A stretch of DNA of 64,000 nucleotides from Trichosphaerium sp. ATCC 40318 (taxonomy: Eukaryota; Protista; Tubulinea): contig JALMLS010000015.1 of assembly GCA_038496445.1 (NCBI GenBank), positions 496,001-560,000 of the forward strand, given 5' to 3'. The notes beneath the pieces are model-generated. The model had not been told where the DNA came from. It saw only the letters and a program-made list of their open reading frames with translations, and searched no databases. The position numbers and the translations under genes were made by a program. Shown piece by piece: positions 53,631-62,601 of the stretch. Every line of letters starts with the position of its first letter. Position 1 is the first letter of the stretch.

Positions 53631-55335
53631 TTATGACTTGAGACATGCTGGTGGATTTACATTGGCAGATTGACCATACACTTTCCAGCAAACAAATTTA
53701 TCACTCCCCTGTACACCATTGTTAGTTAAATACGCATGTATATGATACCAGGTAACAAACAACGTACGTCAGAACGCTTTATGTCAATATCGTGCATGGT
53801 AATAGAAGTGCATGGTACTGTATCAGAGCAAAGAAACACGCCAGCATTCTCCCTATTATTTCTACATAAGAAATATTGAACCATAAATAACATACTTGGT
53901 TGTAGTGCCCTTGATATTAGAGAAATTAATGTCTGAAATCTTTACTGCCTTGAAGTCGGTTAACTCAAATATAATGGTAAGAGGCATAAACATACAGATG
54001 TTTCGTTTTTACACTCTCCGGAATGCTGAGAACTCGGACAGTAATATTGCGTGATAAGAAGCGGATTCTCAACATCTTCAAATGTGAGATCATAGAATGT
54101 GATATTTCTAACCCATCCATCACCGCCTTGCCACGTTTTTATCCTGAAAAATTGAATCAAATTAAAAGTGCATTGACAAAGAAAAGAAACTAACCTTGCT
54201 CCATTTGTTGTTCCATGAAAGGTATTATGTTTAAACGTTATATGTTCAACGTAACCATGCTATTATTATGATAAGCGTACTATTCAAAGATATGATGTTA
54301 CCATTATACTACCGATACTAGCTCCATGTCCATGACCAAAATAATTATTTTCAACAATAATATTACTTGTTGGATTAGATTCATCTTTCGATTCTTCAAT
54401 AGCCACGTTATCATCACCAACATCAATATAGTTATCGTGTATATGAACGTCCTATATAAAATTATTAAATCCGCAAACACACGGGACTGTAACCATACCT
54501 GACCACCAATGTCTATTCCATCAGTATTAGGTGAATCAGACGGAGCAAGAATTGTTAAATTCGAAATTTCACAATGTTGACAAGACAATACCAATTGATG
54601 TTTAGGACTATTTTGAACAGTGATTCCTCTAACCAATATATCAGCAACAATAACATCACATCTCGTACGTAATTATCAAGTTGGTAGAGTCGCTGAAGCA
54701 TATCAGATTAGGAGCAAACGCTGATGGGGTCTTCTTGCGAATTTCCTTTGCAATTGAAGCGTTAACAGCTGTCGGCCGATAACCATGAATCACGTACCCA
54801 CCACTCGCTTCCTCTGCCATCAATTGTTCCTTTTCCTTGTATCTTTATAGTATCAAGATGAGTCCCATGCATAAAGCAAGGGTAGTCATCAGAGTTTGGC
54901 CAGTCCTTAGGTGAGTCCGGTAGAATTATCTGTAAAATAAAAGTTTAAGGTGGCGTCAACAATGATCAGAATATTAGAATATACCTTGGCGTCTTTATCG
55001 AGAGTTACCGTCATGTTACTTCTTGGACTTAGCGGCCAACTAAGAAATGTTCCTTTTGGTACTTCAACTAAAACATAAAAGGTCAACACGTGTTTTCAGA
55101 CTTTGAAGAGATTACCGTTTGAACACTCGTCTATAGCTTTTTGTAGCGCCTAAACCTTTCTATTACTTTCTCACTACGAATACTTTAACTTACCGCGGTA
55201 TCGTTATGTTTACCATCTCCAACAGCGCCGTAGTCCTATTTGAAGTGTCAAACGAAAATTCTTCAAAATACTTTCCTTTACGCTACATGAAAGCACGTAA
55301 GTTGCGAACAAAAGCACTACGAAGGATAATCTCAT
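53631..55335 (-). CDS. Glycoside hydrolase family 28 (polygalacturonase), secreted, multi-exon
   Basis: All four GH28 motifs present (SPNTDGID, GDDNVAI, GHGASIG, RIKTW), plus DYGAVGDGKHNDT and a signal peptide. Confidence 0.93.
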
Positions 55336-55427: not shown

Positions 55428-58400
55428 ATGCAAGATAAAGCACCAAAGCTTGGTCCTGGCATATCTTGTCGTGAACCTAAGCGTAATTATTATAAGATTG
55501 CGTACACACAAGGTAGCGAAGCTGATAAATTAACCGTGTATATTTGTTTTAACTGTTTTGATACAGAGAGCGATACAGGAAGTACTTGCGTACTTACAAA
55601 TCATAAACCATGGAAATTAACTCCAAATTGTGGCATTAGATACTTCGAGGTAATACCCACGTGATCCACGCGCCGTTAAACATAGTTTACAAAATAAAGG
55701 TTACTATTTTGTCAATAGCTGGTGGAGACAAAGCGTTAGCTGTTGGGTTAGCTTCGGAAAGCTACAGAGTAGCTAGGAACTTACCCGGATGGATGGAAGA
55801 CTCCCTAGGTTGGCATGGAGATGATGGCTGCTTCTTTCAAGCCGGAGTTGATTCTGAGTTTTCTGCTCCTTGGGCCGTTCAATGCGCTACTGTAGGCGTA
55901 GGTATGGATCAATCTGGTGCTGTAAGATTTATTAAATCATTTTCGAGAATTTGTGACAGTATGTGTAGGTCTTTGTGACACTTAATGGAAAATTCTATGG
56001 ATTTAAGAGCATTGTTGGAGAAGGATATCCACATGATTTGTATCCTTCTTTGGGATTTCATACAAAAACAGCAAAAGTTTCAGTAACATATAAACCACCT
56101 TTCGTGTTTAGATTGGACGACCTAGCAGATGTAGCAAAGAAGTTTAACGTATGTTCATCAACTGGTTGTATCGAATTTCGACGCTTATCATTTCTTTTAG
56201 AATGACGTGAAGCACAGGTTTCAACTAATATGTTTTCCGTAAACTTTTACTAAAAGTAACCTAGAATTGTTTCATTTGGGACTGGTGGACAGATATCGAG
56301 TCTGGTAAGTCGCTATTGTTTTGATATACTTTATAGCTGTATAATAACGCTTATTGCCTGTAGGGCCAAGGTCACTTGCAGAATATTTGGTGGCCAACAC
56401 ATATTGGTAGTTTATTACAAACCAGAGTTAAAGCCGTTTCAACTGGGAGTGCACATAGTCTTTGTCTAACAGGTAATTTCTTTACTACACAAACTTTCGC
56501 TGACTAATATTCCTTTAAGATGACGGGAAAGTATTAGCATGGGGTTTAAGTGATGCAGGACAGTAAGTTTTCTGAGAATTTTCTGTTTGATTCGAAGGAA
56601 AAAATAGGGTTGTTGGAGATTCCCGTAATTGCTATCGTTCGCCTCAAACAGTACCAATAAACGAGCGTGTAGAACTTATAAGTGCTGGGTGGCATCATAG
56701 CGCTGCTGTTACCAAATCTCAGAGGATTCTTGCGTGGGGAGAGGTAAAGATAACTTGTTTTTGTTTTGGTTCTTGCTTTGCTAACCAAAGCAACAGGCGT
56801 ATCCTAATAAACCTCCTATGTTTCGACCTACAGAAATAAAACATAACGTAATAAGTGATTTCAAAACATTATCATGTGGTGTTATGACGACAATGCTCTT
56901 GGATCAGTGGGGTTCGTTATACGTATACGGTAAAGTCGGCAGTGCACCACATAAGTACAAAAAACTAAACGTGATAAAACAAATGTCTTACTTCCTCAAC
57001 AGTGGCAAGTTTCAGCATAGCATGGGTCCACTTGATGACTTGGAAGCTTTAAGTGTACGCTATACAACTTAAATCATTGTATTATACTAATACAACTTCC
57101 AGCATTCGGGCGTTTTCTTATCCAGTATGTAAATGAAAAAAAAGAGAAATTATATGTTCTCACGTCATGTAGAAAAGGGAAAGCTGGGAATTGTGGACAC
57201 TGCAACAATAATACCATTATGTGATACTGAGAATTTTGTTCAGTTATGTGGAGATATGGAAGCGTGGGGAGCAATACATGGTATGTACTGATACCAAGGT
57301 TTTTTTTTAATCCAATAACTTGTGAAATAGAAAATGGCGATATTTACTATTGGACATCCCTCAGAAAATATCGTGTTATAAAAAGTAATGGCAGGAAGAA
57401 AGTGAAGATAGGAGTCAACGCTAAGTGTATTATAGCTATTGACGGTATGTTATACAACCCAAATTCACGAGTTCAGAAATTTAACATTTCTGTTTTTACT
57501 TGGTGTTTGCTCATGATTGTACTTATAGATCAGGGTTCTTTGTATTCTTGGGGAGAAAGTGCAAGTGGTCAACTGGGCCTTGGAAAAGATATCAAAACAA
57601 CTGAGGAAGTTTTCATTAAACTACCACAGTTTGATGACCTGAAGTACCACGATGTTGATGTTGGTCCATGCACTAACTTACTCATGACGTCTGAACCTCT
57701 AACACCGCCATGGGGTTTTCCAAAAGCCTTTACGGATACCAATGGATGGATACCAAAAGGTTTTGGTAGACATCCGTACTCGGTTTATCCACTAACAAAT
57801 AATGGTTTATCTTATTGGCAAAACCAAGAATACAGCAAGTTTGCACAGTTCTGGAAGTACACGCCTTTGATCACTTTACAACCTTGTCCTATTTTTAGAA
57901 CCAAGACAACACGTGTTTTTTAGACTAACTATTTCTTGTTTTTTAGCAATAATTTGAATGGAGGCGCTTTTGATGTTGATCAGGTTTACGCTGTTTCAAA
58001 CCCAGAGCTTGAGTCGCAGTTTAAAGTGCAGTATAACAGTTTATTAAATAAGTGGGTAAGAGATAACAATAAGGTGATGTTTGCGCTGTTTTCTTACTGA
58101 TTTTTGTAGTCTACTTCTGAAGCTCTGTTCAAAAGGTACGGTTTTCTCTTATCCCTCACATGCACACGATACACTGCTTGCGTTCGAAAATGTGTCGCGA
58201 GGATTGGTTCTGTTTACTAATAGTTAACTAAACTCAAGAGATCACTGGAAGAAATTATCACAAATTAAAAAGAAACAAAATGTTTATGATTTCTTCCAGA
58301 GTTCATTGGACAACTATGAATTTAACTCAAACAGAAATGTACGCATGTAGTTAATTTCTAAACATAGTTTTAAACTTGTATGCCATCAACTTTTATGTGG

Positions 58401-59568
58401 CACACGAAGGGCCAGAAAAGAACTCACTTTCCATTATAATACAATTTTTTTACACTTTAGCAGATGAAGCTCATGTTGGGCGTTCATGGTACCAGTGAAG
58501 CTGCTGTGTGGAGTATATGCCAATCCGGATTCGCTTCTCTAGCAACAGTAGATGAAGGTTGGTATGGTAGAGGTACACAACATATTTTTTTGGAATGAAA
58601 GTGTAACCAAGTTCAGGAATGTACTTTACAAGCAACGCGAACTATGCAGCCAAGTACTCCAAAGAGAAAGTAAAGATATTCATCATTTCTTATTTGATAC
58701 CTGGTAATATATACCCTGTTACAGAAGAAGCTAAAGGTTCTTCAAATTCATTAGCAGGACGCCCAAGTACGTTTACTTTTTTTACTTTTTTTTCAGCAAC
58801 TTGAGGAAACACTCCATCTATTAGTGTGTCGTTAATTTTGTACAAGGTATATCTGGATATCAATCTCATGGTGTTCTTGTCAATTCTAAGGGAATGATAT
58901 CTAATGGAAAAGGAGTAATATATGATGAACTTGTTGTGTTTCAGGTGAGTGACTGTTTCTAAAGTGGTTTTGTTGAGTTCCGCTAAAACAAGGCGTAGGA
59001 GTCCCAAATTGTACCGAAATATGTTGTCTTTGCAACACATAATAAGGCTAAAAGGAGTCAGCAAAGATCTGAGTCTAGAAGAAAGAATAAAGAAGAAAGA
59101 TTAAAAAGAGAACAATCCAAAAAACAAGAAGAAGACGAGGATGATGAATTATCTGATGATGAATTATCGGATGAAGATGAGTTGGAAGAAAGACAGTTAT
59201 GGGGAGACCCTCTTAAAAAGCAAGCTCCCAAAGAAGAGAAAGAAACAATTGAACTCAAAGCGAGTGGTACAGAGGAAGATCAAGTACTAGAAAACGTCCC
59301 AAAGCAAAGCAACGTAGAACAAACACAAGTCCTTGAAAATGCGGAGGAAGATCAAGTACTAGAAAAAGTCCCAAAACAAAACAAAGTAGAACAAACACAA
59401 GAGCCCGAAACACATGTTGACGAAATTGTGATCAAAGAAGAAGACAGTGAGGTTGTGCTGTTAAGAAGAGAAAATGCTAAACTGAAAGAACAGTTGAAAT
59501 TACTAATAGAAAGAACAGGTGTAGATGCAAAAATTCTTAAAGAAATTGGCATAGACACCTCTTTGTAA
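55428..59568 (+). CDS. SPRY + RCC1-repeat + PARP-type ADP-ribosyltransferase fusion protein, multi-exon
   Basis: SPRY (YFEV, LPGW...GWHGDDG, LYPSLG); RCC1 (VSTGSAHSLCL, LYSWGESASGQLGLG); PARP (HGT at 58485, GWYGRG|MYFT...YA, YDELVVF at 58921); acidic coiled-coil tail. Confidence 0.78.
59272..59410 (+). repeat. 72-nt in-frame tandem duplication (EEDQVLE.VPKQ..VEQTQ x2)
   Basis: Copies start at 59272 and 59344. Confidence 0.85.
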
Positions 59569-59674: not shown

Positions 59675-62601
59675 TTATATTTTTGTTGTCCATGGAGATC
59701 CTCTGATTTCATCACCGTTGATCTTGACGGAGATTGTGTAATCGCCAGGGTTTGGTAGTTTGTATGTTACAACGTACAATCCATTGTTTTGGTCCATGAC
59801 ATTTACGTCATCAACCTTACCGCTTGGACCTGAGATGGATACATCAAAGTCATCACCGCCGTCGGTCTTAGGGTTGTTGTCTTTATCAACAGCCTTAATG
59901 ACAAAGGAGTATGAATCAATGAAAGTGTTACCAGCATGGGCGCCTACAAAGAAAGTTAACAAAGTTAAATAAAATCTTTCAAAATAATCAACATACCAGC
60001 TCTGACGTTTACGCTCTTTGGACAGTCCTTAAGTGGTTGCTCTTTAAGAGTTGGTTCAACTCTGTGAATACCAGGTCCAATTGGTTGGTATGTGACATCA
60101 TAGGTACCGTCACCGTTATCAACAATATCGGCTGGGACTTTCTCGCCGTTTGGTCCAATGACATCAACTTCGAATGGATCACCGCCCTGAAACTCAAGTC
60201 AACAAACATGCTCTATACTATTTAAAAAAAACGAAACGTACCTCTTTGAGAGGTTCACCATCACAGTCCTTAGCGATGATTTTGAATTCAGCTGGAAGAG
60301 TATCAAAGATACCATCTTCAAGACCTGGACCGAAAGCTTCGCACATGGAAGCATCAGCACCACCCTTGACTGGCAAGTGGATTGGAGAGTCTTTGATGTG
60401 ATCGCAGAAGATTGGGTTTCTTGGGTCGTGAAGAACGACATCAATCTTGTAATCACCAGGAACCTTTGGATAGTATGTGACATCTACAGTGTCACCATTT
60501 GGTTCCATGTCTACACGCACTGGTGATTCACCAGGTGGGAAGACCTCAACAGAGAAAGGATTGCCCTTGAGTTGGACAGGATCACCATTTCTGTTCTTGG
60601 CGTGGATTTTGAAAGTAGCTGGTTCGCCAGTCTTGACACCAGGTTCAACACCAGGACCGCTAGCAGTGCAAAACATTGCATCAGGTTCATCGAGAGGTGT
60701 CAATACATCAACAGTGTATGGTGAATCTGCGACTTGAGCGCCGTTGAGGAGTACCTCAACCTATTTAAAGGTTAGTAGTGAAAAATGCGAAAGAGCTATC
60801 TTACCTTATGTGGTCCCTTGTCTTCTGGGGTGTATTTGACGTCGTATGTACCATCACCATTATCAGTGAAGTCAGTTGGTACGTCATCACCGTATGGTCC
60901 AGTGACTTTGACTTGGTATGGATCACCACCATCAGGGACAGCGTTTCCACGCTTATCCTTAGACTTGATACTAAAGTCGGTTGGTTTACCTTGCTCATTA
61001 CCAGGTTCAATACCAGGACCCTAGTAAGTCGTGTAAGAAAAGTATTGGGGTAAAGCTCTGAAAAACTTACGGAGACAGTAGTATTTCTAGCATCAGGACC
61101 TTCACGGCTAATATTTGGCCTGAAAGGACTTCCCTTGATGTTTTTATCGAGGAGAGCGACAGTCAGCAAGTGGTTACCAGGTGACTTTGGGACGTATTTA
61201 CAAGAGTAAGTACCATCATTGTTGTCCTACAAAATTGTAAGAAAATGCAAACTACGTAGTTTTAATTTAGTGAATACGCACCTGGCAATCAACAGGAATA
61301 TCAGCACCGCTTGGGTCCTTGAGACCGATGTTCCAGTTAATACCACCTTCCTTCAACTGCTCGTTGAAGCAATTTTTGGCAATAATTTTGAATGGAGCGT
61401 CTTCGTATACTTTACCAGCAGTAAGACCAGGACCTACAAAAGCAGTAAGCTACAAGTATATAATAAAGATAAGGGTACCTTCAGCGTAGCAAAAAGCTGG
61501 GTCAGGTGTTTTACGCTTCATTTCGTCATTTCTACGACGATTTGCGGCGTTATCGTAATCTCTGAAGTATGAGATGTAAGTCATAACAGACAATTCATCG
61601 TTCTCCTTGGCGACCATATCTTCTGGTGCAAGAATTTTTGGAATGTCCATATCACTTTCAGCTTTGTCAATACCAAGAGTAGCGTTGCTAAGCGCATTGG
61701 CCTGAGAAGAAGAGTTAGCGTTATTCGTCAAAAGCCAGTGAAGAAAAAAAGGGTCGTACAGGGCTGAGACTATCTCTGTTGCGTGCTGCTTCTGGGATAG
61801 TGTCCGGTTTGAGTGCTTCTACGAGAGCGCACAATGAAGTACCGTCTTGCCAGCTAACAAGTTTGTAAGAAATTGTTTTTTTCAAATCAGCGTTTCGTCA
61901 CCTGTTAGTGAAGTTCTTGACTCCTTTGTGTGGGATCTTAGATTGTACCCACTTCAAGAGATCGTTCTTTGCGTTTGGAGATACTAATAACATCGTTTAG
62001 TTTTGGTTTTTAACTACTTGTAAAATACTACGTACCACCGCCCTTTTGGATATGGTAGCGAAGGATGAGTGTCCAAATCATACCAAGGATGAGTTTGAGC
62101 TTTTTATCGACGATATCTGCCGTACGCGTTAATTATAAGCGCGTAGTGCGTATAAACCACGTACCTTCTGGACCGATACCAACAAGACGGATTCCTTCGT
62201 CGCTGATAAATTGAAGAGCGAAGTTGTTGTTTTCAAGCTTTTGTACTCTGATCCTTGGCTTTTTGTTGTATACACCACGATTAATTTGCTTTGCTACGGA
62301 AATACCGTAAGTTCCAAAACAAGAGGTTAATAGTGTCAAACGTACCTGAGATAAGCTCCAAAAGGTTAATGAGGTTGATACCGTCTTCAAAATCATTTTG
62401 AAGGTCGGCAATCTTTAAACCGCGTTCCAAAAGGAATGTGTTGCACCATCTGGTGAACGTCTACAAGAGGAGTAAGATACTACAAATACTAGCGTCGGAA
62501 AAGTTTTCGCCCAAAAGCTGAGCGCAGAATCTACAAAAAGCCTGTACCCTCTTTTGGATCATAACCCATGCGGCAACGTCTGTTTTTTCACCCCAAGACA
62601 T
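59675..62601 (-). CDS. abpC: Gelation factor ABP-120 / filamin-like actin cross-linker, multi-exon
   Basis: WVMIQK.TFTRWCN, LILGMIWTLILRY and DELSVMTYISYF (tandem CH domains), followed by filamin Ig repeats (GPG..., DGTY.V.Y.P...G.Y). Confidence 0.9.

Follow-up and report, generated by a model that had tools for sequence, protein, structure and literature searches.

A predicted SPRY-RCC1-PARP protein with a conserved H-Y-E triad in the amoeba Trichosphaerium sp.

The identity of a PARP-family enzyme is largely set by the modules that direct it. In tankyrase, a repeat-based substrate-recruiting module is joined directly to a PARP domain with a His-Tyr-Glu (H-Y-E) triad, without a WGR or helical regulatory domain, and many animal PARPs are antiviral. 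The Glu of the triad is necessary but not sufficient for the elongation of poly-ADP-ribose chains. More than 100 types of eukaryotic PARP architecture have been surveyed (Perina 2014, PMC4245714), and nearly all enzymes of clade 3 are without the Glu, only one clade 3 protein having it (Citarelli 2010, PMC2964712). Here we describe a gene of Trichosphaerium sp. ATCC 40318 that is predicted to encode, in this order, a SPRY domain, an RCC1-like beta-propeller and a PARP-type catalytic domain with a complete triad. The gene lies at positions 55428-59568 on the + strand of a stretch of 64,000 nt of contig JALMLS010000015.1 (hereafter, the window). It is probably a single intact and expressed gene, which would encode a substrate-targeted ADP-ribosyltransferase of ~970 amino acids.

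The exon chain was initially assembled by reading the three + frames, and it comprises 21 exons totaling 2913 nt (970 codons plus the stop), which are without internal stops and are separated by GT-AG introns of 44-125 nt. The ATG is located at 55428, downstream of a stop in the same frame, and the coding sequence closes with the stop codon at 59566-59568; the limits given to the gene in the original prediction proved exact. A search of 1.84 billion proteins with the largest exon (57531-57854) then yielded one protein that is 99% identical (P0001, 638 aa), and this protein is encoded on an environmental JGI contig (L005, 2218 nt) that is itself 99% identical to the window. When aligned to the window, the contig falls into 14 blocks, 13 GT-AG introns of 44-125 nt being removed exactly as modelled (exons 8-21); it also shows 8 single-nucleotide polymorphisms (SNPs), in-frame indels in the acidic tail and a 3' untranslated region (UTR) that extends to 59660. 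This pattern shows that L005 is an assembled mRNA of a closely related strain and not a gene prediction. Because L005 splices exons 8-21 in one frame, from RCC1 exon 8 through the PARP domain to the stop codon, the RCC1 blades, the PARP domain and the tail are carried by one mRNA. The transcript also rules out a frameshift or pseudogene near 57100-57200, where two RCC1-like frames are seen: these are two exons, 57003-57054 (52 nt) and 57103-57124 (22 nt).

The 5' end of the transcript contig corresponds to position 56556, inside exon 7, and its first 52 nt (window 56556-56607) retain intron 7 (56563-56607, 45 nt). Due to this retained intron, P0001 was called from an internal Met; upstream of this Met, L005 continues in frame across exon 8 and its splice to exon 9. 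The database protein is an N-terminally truncated call, without the SPRY domain and the first RCC1 blades.

Exons 1-7 probably belong to the same mRNA as exons 8-21. From the ATG at 55428, their reading frame leads without interruption, across introns of 45-59 nt, to that of exon 8, which the transcript confirms. The three SPRY exons, at predicted boundaries (exon 1, 55428-55649; exon 2, 55700-55921; exon 3, 55969-56148), are linked to the RCC1 exons by a micro-exon of 17 nt (exon 4, 56201-56217, phase 0 to 2), which is the sole phase-compatible link between the two groups. Joins of exon 3 to exon 5 that skip the micro-exon or use other donors were rejected, as they run into stops, imply introns of 21-26 nt or depend on weaker donors. 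An equivalent micro-exon of 20 nt, in the same phase and at the same place, is present in four paralog loci of this genome (L001, L002, L003 and L004), and it forms an island of conservation among L002-L004. Since the alternative joins are defective and the micro-exon is common to all paralogs, the 17-nt exon is the preferred solution. There is also little space for additional 5' exons because a gene on the opposite strand, encoding a GH28 protein, starts 92 bp upstream. Altogether, the original claim of one spliced gene in the order SPRY, RCC1-like propeller, PARP is upheld, directly by L005 for exons 8-21 and through the frame, the micro-exon and the four paralogs for the SPRY link.

Domain searches were run exon by exon or on the natural transcript product P0001. 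Exon 2, which covers half of the SPRY domain, matches the Pfam SPRY family (PF00622, E 1.8e-4, 22.1 bits vs a cut-off of 26.3) and, among solved domains, residues 84-128 of the RanBP10 SPRY (E 9.6e-5); it also matches SPRYD3. A profile of exon 3 built from the five paralogs matches residues 153-201 of the RanBP9/10 SPRY (E 2.7e-4). As exons 2 and 3 match the solved domain in collinear order, the SPRY domain appears to be of the RanBP9/10 type and not a TRIM-type PRY-SPRY (B30.2). Consistently, the best matches are to RanBP9/10 and SPRYD3 and not to TRIM B30.2 domains, and no Pfam match to RING or B-box was found on the exons.

The following region, exons 5 to 14 (first part, 56265-57700), is predicted to form a divergent RCC1-like beta-propeller of ~7 short blades. 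Seven blade-like units of the form G-x-hydrophobic-x-W/Y-G were counted by eye, and the RCC1 family (PF00415) reaches 22.8 bits on exon 6 and 26.2 bits on exon 14 (cut-off 21.7), while RCC1_2 scores 25.9 bits on exon 8 (cut-off 22). On the partial protein P0001, WD40_RLD is matched with an E of 1.2e-10 (41.7 bits vs a cut-off of 150). UVR8, HERC2, HERC1 and RCC2 are among the propellers matched in the PDB. Exons 8-14 of this region are confirmed by L005.

From the end of exon 14 to the start of exon 21 (57701-59046), the gene encodes a conserved pre-PARP segment and the PARP-type ADP-ribosyltransferase catalytic domain, together a conserved module of ~300 aa. P0001 matches PF00644 with an E of 7.7e-11 (42.3 bits vs a cut-off of 26.7), and the closest PDB sequences are those of PARP13 (the best), PARP12, PARP14 and PARP15, with E values of 5e-6 to 3e-4 for the PARP12/14/10/13 group. 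An AlphaFold2 model of the pre-PARP and PARP segment taken from L005 (pLDDT 74, pTM 0.79) points to the same group, its best Foldseek matches being the catalytic domains of PARP12/10/14/13/15 (E ~1e-9, TM 0.65-0.77, target-normalised). The triad itself could be located to single codons: His at 58485-58487, Tyr at 58622-58624 and Glu at 58927-58929. In the alignment to PARP12 this Glu stands at the third triad position, which is Ile in PARP12, and the alignment to PARP12/13/14 also has the His-Gly, the Tyr of the G-M-Y-F motif and the second stacking Tyr at their expected positions. All five copies of the gene in this genome have the same His, Tyr and Glu. The intact triad that had been read from the letters thus holds, on the alignment to PARP12/13/14, the located codons and the identity of the five copies, and the PARP domain is probably enzymatically active.

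The retained Glu sets this domain apart from the clade 3 mono-ADP-ribosyltransferases, whose third triad residue is aliphatic or Thr/Ser. A clade-3-like domain with Glu is unusual, because nearly all clade 3 enzymes have lost it (PMC2964712). No Pfam match on P0001 was found for WGR or for the helical regulatory domain of the DNA-dependent clade 1 PARPs (PARP1-3), and none on the exons or P0001 for macro, WWE, CCCH or RRM domains. HECT had no Pfam match either, the C-terminus being made of the PARP domain and a tail. This tail (59047-59568, the rest of exon 21, with the stop codon) is a basic/acidic low-complexity sequence without a Pfam family, and contains a short amphipathic helix (59461-59565), judged by eye to be a possible coiled coil. 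In its acidic run of Asp, Glu and Ser (59139-59165), the genome and the related-strain transcript differ by in-frame indels of 3 nt.

The genome (a 70.3-Mb assembly of 642 contigs, ~37% GC) was scanned for other copies with exon probes, which revealed four close paralogs on contigs C36, C146, C31 and C70, all with collinear SPRY, RCC1, pre-PARP, PARP and tail exons. Compared with its closest paralog, the window copy shows 32-54% identity in the recognition domains and 71-97% in the PARP exons. Three of the paralogs share 80-85% DNA identity over ~4 kb with flanks that cannot be aligned, and are therefore true dispersed paralogs. Among these three, dN/dS (Nei-Gojobori) was 0.12-0.23 in the SPRY domain, 0.22-0.36 in the propeller, 0.03-0.04 in the pre-PARP segment, 0.14-0.20 in the PARP core and 0.28-0.64 in the tail, the highest of all parts; no domain-wide diversifying signal was seen among them. 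Because dN/dS is low while the non-coding blocks (introns) of the three paralogs have diverged about as much as synonymous sites, every domain is maintained by purifying selection.

At two distant loci, on C107 and C61, PARP exons are likewise preceded by RCC1 repeats on their strand; the family counts 5 close and 2-3 distant copies. One site on C397 (22519-22620) scores identically to C61:99222-99323 with the His-exon probe, and could represent a duplicate or haplotig of that C61 locus. The His exon has 119 matches genome-wide, and the PARP module is therefore part of a very large family; a genome-wide SPRY scan was too insensitive to recover even the paralogs. L002, L003 and L004 appear to be without a separate counterpart of exon 5, and the intron that follows their 20-nt micro-exon is predicted to measure ~39 nt (L003 2848-2940 and the equivalents in the other two), vs a confirmed minimum of 44 nt in the window gene.

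Outside this genome, the three-domain order was not found. Word-index searches with P0001 gave 13 matches when the whole protein was used and 5 with just the PARP region, and besides P0001 none of them combines PARP with RCC1 or PARP with SPRY. The PARP relatives are stand-alone (P0151, 42-43% identical) or fused to Roc-COR, LRR, EGF or PH domains. An exhaustive search with exon 14 returned only P0001 as covering the pre-PARP part, and six other matches that were scanned (five of the eleven best and one lower) are plain RCC1-repeat proteins. The negative for this architecture in protein collections comes from the word-index searches and this one single-exon exhaustive search; the Protein Atlas gave no usable match. 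In the literature searched, no paper has SPRY, RCC1 and "PARP catalytic" together, and the broad PARP surveys (Citarelli 2010, PMC2964712; Perina 2014, PMC4245714) mention neither SPRY nor RCC1. The initial statement that no described protein was known to have the SPRY-RCC1-PARP order therefore stands for the literature and the protein collections searched.

The nearest database relative of the pre-PARP and PARP module is P0151, an intron-free stand-alone protein of 366 aa encoded at 159-1259 of an environmental contig of ~37% GC (L006). Its gene adjoins a uDENN-DENN gene (1346-2848), and the DENN-domain neighbor places it in a eukaryote, so that the PARP module exists unfused in another eukaryote as well. 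PARP-like segments were also detected on 14 IMG/VR viral contigs, several of them labelled GVMAG (L008-L021), with 29-60% identity over 20-104 residues and the same Y-G-R/K-G-x-Y-F-T motif. A giant-virus origin of the module was considered and rejected, since the contigs from viral metagenome-assembled genomes (MAGs) have only distant matches and the nearest relative, P0151, is eukaryotic.

How might such a protein work? The SPRY domain and the propeller would dock onto a single partner protein or a few of them, and the PARP domain would transfer ADP-ribose from NAD+ onto these partners or onto itself, the N-terminal domains thus presumably choosing the target. That recognition modules feed an ADP-ribosylating domain, as had been proposed, is a reasonable reading of the domain families. 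Several points weigh against the picture of a single substrate-targeted enzyme. The join of exons 1-7 is outside the transcript coverage, the sole transcript contig found beginning at 56556, and the micro-exon donor, GTTTCA, is the only atypical splice site in the gene. The Pfam SPRY score stays below cut-off on the exon pieces. As to the chemistry, an H-Y-E triad is compatible with mono- as well as poly-transfer, and among PARP12/13/14, the solved structures nearest to this domain, there are only mono-transferases and inactive proteins. If the enzyme is active, it would represent a new targeting logic, in which the recognition modules of HERC ligases are placed on an H-Y-E PARP whose closest solved relatives lost the Glu. 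The PARP repertoire of this amoeba appears to be unusually large and modular, and the gene extends it further; it is also a tractable candidate because the ~300-aa PARP module also exists on its own, in P0151.

The original prediction went further and suggested a part in defence. As developed here, this view makes the protein an immune sensor-effector: its SPRY domain and propeller would detect proteins of pathogens, or host proteins that pathogens have modified, for tagging by the PARP domain, and the gene would belong to a large amoebal PARP defence repertoire with exchangeable sensors. The antiviral role established for many animal PARPs speaks in its favor, as do the 119 genomic matches of the His exon, the Roc-COR, LRR and EGF fusions among the relatives that the PARP module has in the databases, and the much lower identity of the recognition domains (32-54%) than of the PARP exons (71-97%) between the window copy and its closest paralog. 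Against it, dN/dS is well below 1 in both SPRY and propeller among the three close paralogs, the copies are only 5 close and 2-3 distant, they are dispersed, the window gene has GH28 and filamin-repeat genes as neighbors, and the SPRY domain is of the RanBP9/10 type and not B30.2. With purifying selection, dispersed paralogs, these flanks and this SPRY type, the defence role is unsupported and we regard it as unlikely; the data agree no less well with a regulatory role outside immunity.

A broader proposal would make the SPRY-RCC1-PARP genes one branch of a protist-specific system, in which a portable H-Y-E PARP module of ~300 aa is mounted on interchangeable sensors (SPRY and propeller here; Roc-COR, LRR or EGF elsewhere), and each enzyme has its own protein targets; these might be small GTPases that dock on the RCC1-like propeller, or proteins belonging to invading microbes and giant viruses. 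We consider this quite unlikely on present sequence evidence. If it were true, the system would be an ADP-ribosylation-based counterpart of the ubiquitin defence of the TRIM/HERC type.

It is very unlikely that the PARP domain is a catalytically silent scaffold, binding NAD+ or ADP-ribose or offering an interaction surface as in PARP13/ZAP. PARP13 is indeed the best sequence match in the PDB and the Pfam score for PARP is modest, but PARP13 is without the His and the Glu, whereas five paralogs here have in common the His-Gly, the Tyr, the second stacking Tyr and the Glu, and the PARP core and the pre-PARP segment show dN/dS values of 0.14-0.20 and 0.03, respectively. Least credible of all is a division into two transcription units, with exons 1-3 making a small SPRY protein and the remainder an RCC1-PARP protein of its own: no transcript contig other than L005 was found and it begins at 56556, in exon 7 and intron 7, the micro-exon donor is weak, and probing metagenome contigs with exon 3 for a 5' transcript returned no relative in a search that was uninformative, but the frame runs on from the ATG at 55428 into the confirmed exon 8, RCC1 blades 1-2 (exons 5-7) lie upstream of the start of L005, which argues that the contig is simply truncated, the same order and the phase-2 micro-exon recur in all five paralogs at 30-90% protein identity, and the SPRY exons are only 52 nt (intron 3) from the micro-exon.

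On its 5' side, the gene stands head-to-head with a multi-exon GH28 (polygalacturonase-like) gene on the - strand (53960-55335), which has a signal-peptide-like start at 55335. Because only 92 bp separate the two genes, they probably share a promoter region. On the 3' side, a gene with filamin/ABP280 repeats (59675-61169, - strand) is arranged tail-to-tail, and the end of the PARP 3' UTR (59660) is ~15 bp from its last coding exon.

Compared with known systems, the catalytic part is closest to PARP12/14/10/13 (clade 3 ARTDs), its nearest solved relatives in both sequence and fold, with which it has in common a short spacing between the two Tyr and an extension on the N-terminal side of the PARP core. 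It differs from them in keeping the Glu, where theirs is Ile, Leu or Val (PMC2964712), at an identity of 15-20%, and in being preceded by SPRY and an RCC1-like propeller instead of macro, WWE, CCCH or RRM domains. In its layout the protein resembles tankyrase, with a recruiting module directly before an H-Y-E PARP domain and no WGR or helical domain found. Tankyrase, however, recognises its partners through clusters of ankyrin repeats, its SAM domain is absent here, and the catalytic similarity is weak (E 0.35-0.7).

On the recognition side, HERC1 and HERC2 also carry an RCC1-like propeller, with a SPRY domain in HERC1, as partner-binding modules before a protein-modifying enzyme; in contrast to the protein described here, which has no HECT domain, their effector is a HECT ubiquitin ligase, and they are much larger with another domain order. 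Exons 2 and 3 match RanBP9, RanBP10 and SPRYD3 best, and do so collinearly with the domain, but RanBP9/10 continue into the LisH-CTLH-CRA part of the CTLH E3 complex, of which nothing is seen here. Finally, TRIM sensors combine a PRY-SPRY (B30.2) domain with RING, B-box and coiled coil, whereas the Trichosphaerium protein, without a match to RING or B-box, appears to join a SPRY domain of the RanBP9/10 type to its propeller and PARP domain.

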